Shown: piece by piece, positions 38,501 to 41,500 of the stretch | Layout: each line of letters starts with the position of its first letter | Position numbering within the stretch: position 1 is the first letter of the stretch | From: Podarcis tiliguerta | Taxonomy: Eukaryota | Length of the DNA: 64,000 nucleotides | NCBI GenBank assembly: GCA_965153285.1 | Contig: OZ229113.1 | Direction: 5' to 3' (one strand) | Program-made: the position numbers and the translations under genes | The notes under the pieces: model-generated | What the model saw: only the letters and a program-made list of their open reading frames with translations | What the model was told of the DNA's origin: nothing | Databases searched by the model: none

Positions 38501-41500
38501 TTGGCACTGCAGGAGAGGAGAAGGAGGTCATCCCTGACAGGAGATGATGTCACTGATCTCGAAAGTGCTGAGGAGAAGGTATCTTTATTCTAACCCAGTT
38601 GTCCCACTAATATTTCAGGTTTGGCTAATATCAGCCACTTTAAACGCTTAGCTTGTTGTCTTATGTAGTGGCCCTTCCAAGCCCTTTCTGTTTACTTTAA
38701 AACACATTGTATTGTTCTGCAGTGCTCAATCCACTTTACTCCAGGACAAATCTGTGAGGGCTCCTCAGATTCTTTCAGGATTTTGATCTTAAAACTTTTA
38801 GATGGTATAAATCTAGAAGCCGACACTACTACACTTTTAAAAAGAGAGAGAAAGGAAAATGGATTTTCAATGAATTATTAAGGATGGATGGGTGGGGTGT
38901 GGAATCCAGTAATGATTTTGACAGGTCATAGTTAATGAGGAGAATCTGGAAGCGACCAGAGGCTCCTTCAGACTGTGACTCTTCGCCAGTCAAATCACAT
39001 GAGCAGGCATTGTACAATCGCCTGCAGCAGCAGAGTCCCTCATTATTGCCTGTCTCTTCAGCCCTCACAGCTGCAGATTGCAAGTGCCCCTCAGGAGACT
39101 CCCCCAAGTCGTCCCATGCCGCCAGAAGCCCGAAGGCTTATTGTCAATAAGAATGCTGGAGAAACTCTTCTGCAAAGGGCAGCCCGACTGGGATACGAGG
39201 CAAGCATTGTTTCTGAAGTTCACTACTCTGAATTACAATGTGGAAGATGCTTGGTGTCACACATAATTCTAACTGTGCACGTGGTTGGAGTCTCTCTTTG
39301 TGTTCCTTCTCAACATGTCGAAATATCTCCAGGCTCTCTGTTCTGTTTCTTTATTCAAGCGTGCAATTAGTATATTTTGTGAGCAGGGCTAGGAAAGAAA
39401 CAATATAAACCCCTGTAAGTTAATAACCTTGAGCCTGAATAGGCGCCAGTCATTTTCAATAAGAAATCAGTTCTTGATGTGCTTTGCAGGATGGGGATCG
39501 TGAGTAAGTAGTGGGGGATGGGGAGAGATACCCCGATACACAGCCAAAGTTAACATATATGCTACATTTCAGGAAGGTTAATTACCGGCACAGCTTTGGC
39601 AGCGTCAGAGTGTGGACACGCTTCATTTCAGGGCTGCTTTTGAACTTCGCATTTTAATGTTATGAATATATATTTTGTGATGCATTCCCATATTTGAAAA
39701 ACAAACTGGCATTTAGAGCTGGTAAATCACTGGGACTTACAGACTTCAGGTGAAAATAGTCATATGTACAAATAGTTTGGAGATCAGACTTATTAGCAAA
39801 GCAGCTCTATAGGTGCCTGTGTCTTTGGGTTTATTTTCCTTTCTACATTTTTAGACATTGCTTGTAAGAATGCTGCCATCCTTAAAATGCTATATATAGA
39901 GAGAGAAAGAGGGCGGGGGATGGGTCCTGACGAATCCTTCTGTTGATTTTGTTCTATGGAAAGGTTTTGTTTACTTCTACCTGTAGCAATAAAATGTGAG
40001 ATCTTCAAAAGCAGGGGTGTGGACTGGGGAACCGGTGCCCTCCATATGTTGCTGGACTCCAGCTCCCATAAACTGCAGGGATGATGGGAATGACTTGCTT
40101 CCAGTGGTGGTTATAGAGCTTAGTCAAGCACAAGTCAATCAGAACTTTACCTGTTCTGATCCTTAATCAAGAAGTAGTCAATTTGCTGTACCCCTTTTCC
40201 TTGATGAAAAAGAGAAGAGAATCAGTTCAGTATGTTGAAGCCTTTGTTGAGGGGCTAGATAGCAATGTGGCAACTGAAATACGGGTAGTGGTGATATATT
40301 TAACTTCTTGTGTGGTAGGGCAATGTGGCATCTTGTATATGGGAAAAGTCCAGTGATTAAAGTCACAACAGACAATTTCATTCTCCAATGCATCATGGAG
40401 CACTTTCTAGTCTTGTTGTGTTGGATGAGTTTCAGTTAGCAAGACTTATGGACATGGACAAGGTGCTTGACTTGCTTTGGGCAACTACTTCTGCTCTTCT
40501 CCCTTGATGCTCATGGTTTTTTAAAACAGCAGGGTTGACCACATCAGAGAGGTGATTAAAGCCTCCTTGCAAGAGGGGGTGGGCCCCCCACCTGTCAAAA
40601 GGAGATAGTGTTAAGACCACTCCTTAAGAAACACTCTGTGGATTCAGAAAATCTAAATAGAAATTGGTCAGTCACTAATGTTTCCTTCTTGGGCAAGGTT
40701 CTTGTGGGGTTGCAGGACAGATCTTGGGTATCCTGGGTGAAACCAATCTTTTAGTTCCATTTCAGTTGGGATGTAGGCTTGCTTTGGGCGACCCTGTTAG
40801 GAGAGAGACAGAAGAGTGTATTCCTGTTGCCGCTAATTTATTTCTCAAGGGCTTTTGACACCATTGGTCATTCTATGCTTCTGGAATGACTGTCTGAGCT
40901 GGGGTTAGGTAGCACCACTACCAATCTGACTTGGATGGTTGTTTTCAGAGGGTGGCGTGTGCTGATTTTGACCTATGTGGCTTTGACCTATGTGGCTCAG
41001 CACCCCAATTCCTCAAGGGCCTCTTCTCCCCACATGAAGCAACCCAGACCCTACTCTGTGTGACCTCCTGTGGGAGGTGTGGAGGGTGGCAACAGGAGAA
41101 GGAGCCTTTTCCATGGTGGCCCCTCTCCCCTGTAAGTGGAGTGCTCTCTCCAGGGAGGCACACCCGTGCCTGTTTCTAGGTACCAGGCAGAGCCATTCTT
41201 ATTCACCTAGGCCTTGGGATCTTAATTTTAGCAGGGTGTGGTGGATCTGGAGCTGTTTTTATGTATGTTAGTTGTGTCTGCTGAGTGTCGATGGGGTGTG
41301 TAGGAACAGAATAGAAAAGGAATGGTTGGCTGACTAGGAGCACTCCCATGCTGCAGCATTTTGTTGCAGGACCCACTTGTCTCTGTAGGATCTATAGCTG
41401 TTAGTAGTGGAGACAGTTCTGAACCTCTGTTCTTCAGCCACATTGGGCTTCTGAGGATGGACATTGAGAACGAACAACAAGAGTTCAGCACCACCTTATT

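Follow-up and report, generated by a model that had tools for sequence, protein, structure and literature searches.

An old alternative 3' splice site in exon 10 of BCOR has probably become the sole one in squamates

The question raised by this locus is how exon 10 of a lizard BCOR gene is read when its start, as judged by homology with other vertebrates, leads to a stop codon after only 17 codons. An earlier reading of the DNA, made from the letters only (the sequence-only reading), proposed that a cryptic acceptor lying within the exon had taken over, and offered consensus errors in the assembly as the alternative. Here, the window means the whole stretch of DNA analysed, 64,000 nucleotides in length, and positions are counted from its first letter.

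The plus strand of the window carries the BCOR gene, as determined by exon mapping and by tblastn searches with lacertid BCOR proteins. The closest database protein, P0282 from Podarcis lilfordi, contains the Pfam BCOR region (PF15808), three ankyrin repeats and a C-terminal PUFD domain (PF16553), in that order, and its exons align collinearly with the window at 94–100% identity; three HSPs with lower values (60–90%) are alignments that extend into introns. The gene is BCOR and not its paralogue BCORL1, as the top matches in all lacertids are named BCL-6 corepressor and share 98–99% identity. Over the large exon, identity was 99.4% to P. lilfordi, 99.1% to Podarcis muralis and 97.7–98.7% to Podarcis raffonei, Lacerta agilis and Zootoca. 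In exon 4 there were five mismatches to P. lilfordi, and the window matched none of the compared lacertids exactly. The source is accordingly a Podarcis-like lacertid, probably a further Podarcis species or a near relative of that genus. The exons that frame the region of interest are as follows.

Within the open reading frame 17869-20724, plus strand: BCOR large exon (identity to lacertid BCOR).
34332-34609, plus strand: BCOR exon 7 (exon mapping).
34940/35042-35299, plus strand: BCOR exon 8, with two acceptors (exon mapping).
38250-38578, plus strand: BCOR exon 9, ending in phase 0 (translation and tblastn and, at the 5' edge, RNA depth and loose ends).
48300-48467, plus strand: BCOR exon 11 (in frame with 39199; exon mapping).
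56034-56180, plus strand: a further BCOR exon (exon mapping).
Within about 58075-58464, plus strand: two BCOR exons (exon mapping).
58945-59244, plus strand: a further BCOR exon (exon mapping).

The donor of exon 9 is AAG/gt at 38578/38579, in phase 0. An assembly gap of 148 N is present at 21296-21443, in the intron directly after the large exon, and lies near the site where an alternative 18-residue segment (MEGLQEDSILCLPAAYCE in birds and turtles) precedes the sequence RAMMRFSE (at about 21828 in the window). A minus-strand open reading frame of 92 residues at 38829-39107 was without support and was set aside as a chance occurrence.

The ancestral exon 10, 38925-39199, is 275 nt long, which is two above a multiple of three, and its coding sequence crosses three reading frames. 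Frame 1, from 38925, begins with VIVN and meets a stop after 17 codons; frame 2, from 38932, carries the conserved sequence RRIWKRPE...LLPVS and ends at a TAA at 39148-39150; and frame 3, the QPSQLQ... side, is open from 39062 for 46 codons up to 39199. Each of these (VIVN, RRIWKRPE...LLPVS and QPSQLQ..., respectively) is homologous to residues of the long forms of turtles, alligator and birds, and in BCOR of turtle, alligator, bird, mammal and lungfish the three pieces make up a single continuous segment. The window therefore contains one extra base near 38937 and another near 39058. Both stops had been described in the sequence-only reading, namely the TGA met by a 275-nt exon starting at 38925 and the stop at 39148-39150 that ends the conserved segment read from 38932, and translation bears them out; the extra base that it placed near about 39057 is put by alignment at 39057-39058. 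Its description of the sequence proved correct throughout.

38925-39061, plus strand: abandoned 5' part of exon 10, 137 nt, homologous to a 44-residue segment in turtles and now intronic (alignment; zero RNA depth in run X24 over 38610-39019).
38935-38938, plus strand: first +1 insertion, a G at about 38937, shifting frame 1 to frame 2 (alignment; gap-free in contigs X1, X8 and X15 record 3).
38976-38978, plus strand: TGA that ends frame 1 after 17 codons (translation).
39057-39058, plus strand: second +1 insertion, the extra T in tctcTtcag, shifting frame 2 to frame 3 (alignment; gap-free in contigs X1, X8 and X15 record 3).

A self-BLAST search revealed no intact second exon 10 in the window, the presence of which would make the copy at 38925 a decaying duplicate. 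The sole related match was an old partial copy of exon 11 at 43593-43715, 78% identical to 48245-48367. This copy lies inside intron 10 and comprises the last ~55 nt of that intron and the first ~68 nt of exon 11.

Four public runs were aligned to 38200-39400, two of DNA (X1 from organism A and X8 from organism D) and two of RNA (X15 and X24, both from organism F). Contigs from X1 and X8 each span the interval in one piece with no indel in 38925-39199, and a low-depth, unspliced X15 contig (record 3) that covers 38841-39088 is gap-free and has both extra bases. Relative to the window, the X1 contig has two substitutions and a 4-nt deletion at 38843 in intron 9, while the X8 contig has six substitutions, so neither represents the window's own haplotype. 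Hence, both insertions are real: contigs built from the reads of three organisms with different labels carry the two extra bases, which are thus present in at least three genomes besides the one that supplied the window. Assembly consensus errors would leave a lizard that truly encodes the long exon 10, and the facts that each insertion is a single base and that one extends a short T run are in keeping with such errors. However, this explanation, which the sequence-only reading had held in reserve, is refuted by the DNA contigs (organisms A and D) and by the unspliced X15 record 3 (organism F); these are independent, lack an indel at either position and each include substitutions relative to the window, so that none is simply the window haplotype, and the RNA bypasses the segment entirely. 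We regard it as extremely unlikely. The unspliced X15 contig starts at 38841, beside the site of the 38843 deletion in organism A, possibly owing to a polymorphism there.

The RNA runs reveal which acceptor is used. A spliced X15 contig of 3298 nt (3.3 kb) joins 38578 to 39062, skipping 483 nt bounded by GT and AG, and the same joint was found in nine X24 raw reads with eight different starts. The depth of X24 RNA is zero over 38610-39019 and 13 just after 39061, and in every X24 pair the first mate maps to the minus strand, which is what a stranded library should give for a gene on the plus strand. None of the exon starts 38925, 38932, 39071 and 39077 had a joint supported by three or more reads in the RNA of organism F; with none of nine junction reads, use of another acceptor at up to about 28% is compatible with these data, which represent RNA from one organism label. 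Donor 38578 is thus joined in RNA to the internal acceptor at 39062, and the part that begins at 38925 is absent from the mature mRNA. The proposal that an internal acceptor had taken over is supported on this point: the acceptor joined to donor 38578 in RNA-seq data is the one at 39062, and no read or contig contains a joint to 38925.

38579-39061, plus strand: intron 9 as spliced, 483 nt, with GT at 38579-38580 and AG at 39060-39061 (X15 spliced contig; nine X24 reads).
38923-38924, plus strand: AG of the disused ancestral acceptor, exon start 38925 (VIVN.. homologous to VTVT.. of the long forms; no RNA joint).
39037-39059, plus strand: pyrimidine tract of the used acceptor and branch-like CTCAT with its A at 39042; encodes SLLPVS in the long form (sequence).
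39062-39199, plus strand: BCOR exon 10 in its expressed form, 138 nt or 46 codons, with phase 0 at both ends (RNA joint, with depth stepping up at 39061/39062; lacertid models in RefSeq and UniProt have the identical junction).
39068-39076, plus strand: two further in-frame CAGs, exon starts 39071 and 39077 (sequence; below the three-read listing threshold in RNA).
39200-39201, plus strand: GC donor of intron 10, GAG/gcaagc (RNA loose ends at 39200 continue as the first bases of exon 11 at 48300).

The sequences in front of the two acceptors differ in quality, much as had been noted from the letters. The acceptor before 38925 is poor, with nine pyrimidines among the 17 positions from -20 to -4, a longest run of four and G-rich sequence upstream. 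The acceptor before 39062 is good (13/17 pyrimidines, a run of seven and the branch-like CTCAT 20 nt upstream), and the further in-frame CAGs ahead of 39071 and 39077 are present; the equivalent of 39071 is the annotated junction in Anolis and Sceloporus (EEK/LQT..). At the other end of the exon, intron 10 (about 9.1 kb) is of the GC-AG type, with GAG/gc at 39199/39200 and ttccag/G at 48299/48300, and because RNA runs from 39199 into exon 11 the GC donor at 39200 is truly used.

At the protein level, use of the internal acceptor leaves BCOR 44 residues shorter than in turtles, crocodilians and birds, the window holding 45 codon-equivalents of the lost segment. The sequence-only reading had predicted a loss of about 45 linker residues just before the ankyrin repeats, in good agreement with the 44 obtained by alignment with these outgroups. 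In the expressed protein ..LESAEEK is followed directly by PSQLQIAS.., and the Pfam Ank_2 (ankyrin) match starts 29 residues further on. In the long turtle form the 219 positions of PF15808 are matched through to position 219, which falls 24 residues into the 44-residue segment, while in both the short turtle form and Podarcis the match ends at position 197, at the end of exon 9, and the last 22 positions are missing. Squamate BCOR is without a conserved basic, Ser/Asp-rich motif of 16 residues that belongs to this segment, and the linker that leads to its ankyrin repeats is shorter. The literature searched gave no function for the 44-residue segment; a review (PMC13703134) treats the alternative AF9-binding segment of 34 residues but not this one. 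As the segment is apparently missing in a whole order of reptiles, it seems dispensable for core PRC1.1 function.

The distribution of the short junction was examined in 128 proteins taken from squamate clusters, 116 of which carry both landmarks. These 116 represent 35 species: six geckos, a skink, a cordylid, five lacertids, an amphisbaenian, Varanus, five iguanians and fifteen snakes. The short junction was found in all 116 informative models and the long form in none, the longest X1 isoforms included. In these models ..EEK is followed by PSQLQIAS.., except that in Anolis and Sceloporus the junction falls three residues later, at a CAG 9 nt further on. The models are mostly Gnomon or Ensembl predictions, from which a rare or tissue-limited long isoform would escape; among them is a Micrurus entry that we take, from its UniProt accession series, to be transcriptome-derived. 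In Podarcis muralis, P. raffonei, P. lilfordi, Lacerta agilis and Zootoca vivipara, all isoforms in RefSeq and UniProt read EEK/PSQLQ and the structure is as in the window. The short-exon gene model is thus already present in RefSeq and UniProt for several lacertids, and the structure itself is known.

Outside the squamates, the long form was found in 202 proteins. The same short junction (..EDK/PSQLQIAS) is also annotated there, as an alternative isoform in many turtles and in isoform X4 of Crocodylus porosus, and the difference between isoforms X9 and X11 of Chelonia mydas is exactly the 44 residues (VTVT...LLPVSQ). One model of a desman (Galemys), labelled 'low quality, partial', shares a short junction and carries little weight. 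No tuatara BCOR was present in the protein lists and clusters examined. At the protein level, the comparison of exon 10 across groups accordingly has lacertids and other squamates short (116/116), and the long forms of turtles, alligator and birds align to the three frame pieces of the window.

Since the junction is the sole one in 35 squamate species and is annotated in turtles and a crocodile, the annotated proteins indicate that the acceptor is an old, regularly used alternative 3' splice site, neither cryptic nor a lacertid novelty. In this respect the sequence-only reading, which had called the acceptor cryptic, does not hold. From the same annotation we infer that fixation of the internal acceptor dates to the squamate stem. 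A more recent event, specific to lacertids, in which a previously cryptic exonic acceptor took over after frameshifts had disabled the long exon, would fit with the finding of both frameshifts so far only in Podarcis-like genomes and with the limited decay of the segment. Against it stand the same junction as the only one in all informative models from 35 squamate species across the crown group and its annotation as an alternative in turtles and Crocodylus porosus, and we consider so late a takeover quite improbable.

The state of the abandoned 137 nt bears on how long it has been out of use. When the segment was compared in translation, with an X at each of the two breaks, and the frames were thereby corrected, 32 of 45 residues were identical to Chrysemys and 33 of 45 to Alligator (71–73%), with no internal stop. 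The identity between the functional segments of chicken and turtle, at 26/44, is below that of the abandoned lizard segment. Among four Podarcis-like genomes there were no differences in the 137 nt versus seven variable sites in the remaining 346 nt of intron 9, although this contrast is weak, as about 2.8 differences would be expected (P about 0.06). The earlier suggestion that the abandoned part is decaying is thus only partly upheld: the two frameshifts speak for it, but amino-acid identity with frames corrected is still 71–73%. Neutral substitution rates in squamates are uncertain by a factor of two or more, too loose to date the loss by decay. On a rough estimate, the segment seems to have kept somewhat more identity than would be expected had it evolved neutrally from the squamate stem onwards.

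The high identity could mean a more recent loss of the coding role or a constraint of a non-coding kind. In the lacertid line, the long form may have persisted as a minor isoform up to a fairly recent date; some of the segment may be under constraint because it serves as the branch-site and tract region or carries a different splicing signal; or the segment may just decay slowly. Selection in squamates on the 137 nt as a non-coding element, for example in splicing control of the internal acceptor or as a seldom used 'poison' acceptor that feeds nonsense-mediated decay and so sets BCOR dosage, would explain both the 71–73% identity of a segment missing from all squamate protein models and its invariance among the four Podarcis-like genomes; we think this unlikely.

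A related explanation is that splicing to 38925 or 38932 continues, weakly or in particular tissues, with the resulting stop-containing transcripts sent to nonsense-mediated decay as a means of tuning BCOR dosage. Both AGs are intact, the segment is well preserved (none against seven variable sites among the four genomes) and the RNA sampling is shallow, all of which would suit such unproductive splicing. However, no read or contig has a joint of this type, X24 depth is zero over the whole of 38610-39019, the pyrimidine tract of the upstream acceptor is poor and the none-against-seven contrast is itself weak, so that continued use of the upstream site appears improbable.

It is a well-known process for a 3' splice site to pass from alternative to constitutive use and for part of an exon to turn into intron as it does so. 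The evidence from the window and from the squamate models is best explained in the same way: an old alternative 3' splice site very probably became the sole one in squamates, leaving the upstream 137 nt as intron. The ancestral exon 10 would have had two acceptors, the upstream one (38925) giving the long form and the internal one (39062) a form 44 residues shorter, with the pyrimidine tract of the latter supplied by the coding sequence for ..SLLPVSQ. Squamates would have kept only the internal acceptor, and the upstream 137 nt would then have become the 3' end of intron 9. In the Podarcis-like lineage, the two real 1-nt insertions and the weak upstream acceptor mean that the long form can no longer be encoded, and the insertions probably arose after the segment had lost its coding role.

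Searches of the literature on BCOR in lizards and squamates found nothing relevant to a change in exon 10, and no published description of the exon-10 shift was found. What may be undescribed is the combination of a long isoform that is absent from all annotated squamate models and a reading frame that is broken in Podarcis-like lizards. For annotation, it follows that the apparent frameshifts in lacertid BCOR are real yet harmless, because the gene is intact via the internal acceptor. In turtles and a crocodile, the annotated short isoform probably has a function and does not represent noise. At the level of DNA as well as RNA, the locus is a clean example of the change from alternative to constitutive use of a 3' splice site, and it opens no long-standing question.

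A second choice of acceptor in the same gene provides a comparison. Mammalian BCOR includes an alternatively spliced segment of 34 residues that binds AF9/MLLT3 (PMC13703134). In the window, the two acceptors of exon 8, at 34940 and 35042, differ by exactly 34 residues, and the same alternative segment is annotated in Apteryx; this segment appears to be the counterpart of the AF9-binding segment of human BCOR. In organism F, the RNA sequence joined to the start of exon 9 (38250) is mostly that of the end of exon 7 (..AAGAACTCCAAAG; 34609), in 19 reads with an agreement of 0.74 and also in the X15 contig. The most frequent of the sampled transcripts thus leaves out exon 8 entirely and, with it, the 34-residue AF9/MLLT3-binding segment. 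The transcript that skips exon 8 corresponds to the annotated isoforms X4 and X5, of about 1593 residues.

The mammalian 34-residue choice likewise relies on an alternative acceptor inside an exon of BCOR and removes a segment from an interaction region. However, it concerns a different exon and a different segment and is still alternative in lizards, whereas the choice in exon 10 is fixed. The closest parallel to the latter is found in the short isoforms of turtles and Crocodylus porosus, in which the junction ..E(D/E)K/PSQLQIAS.. is the same and is made by the same internal acceptor. There, the short form is annotated next to a long one whose frame is intact; in the window the upstream part is frame-broken and, unlike those of turtles, the squamate models are all short-only. 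Known cases in which an alternative 3' splice site has become constitutive resemble the window in that the upstream part is coding in outgroups, is missing from the mRNA and has a broken frame, and in that the downstream acceptor existed beforehand. The window differs from them in that the abandoned part is unusually well preserved.
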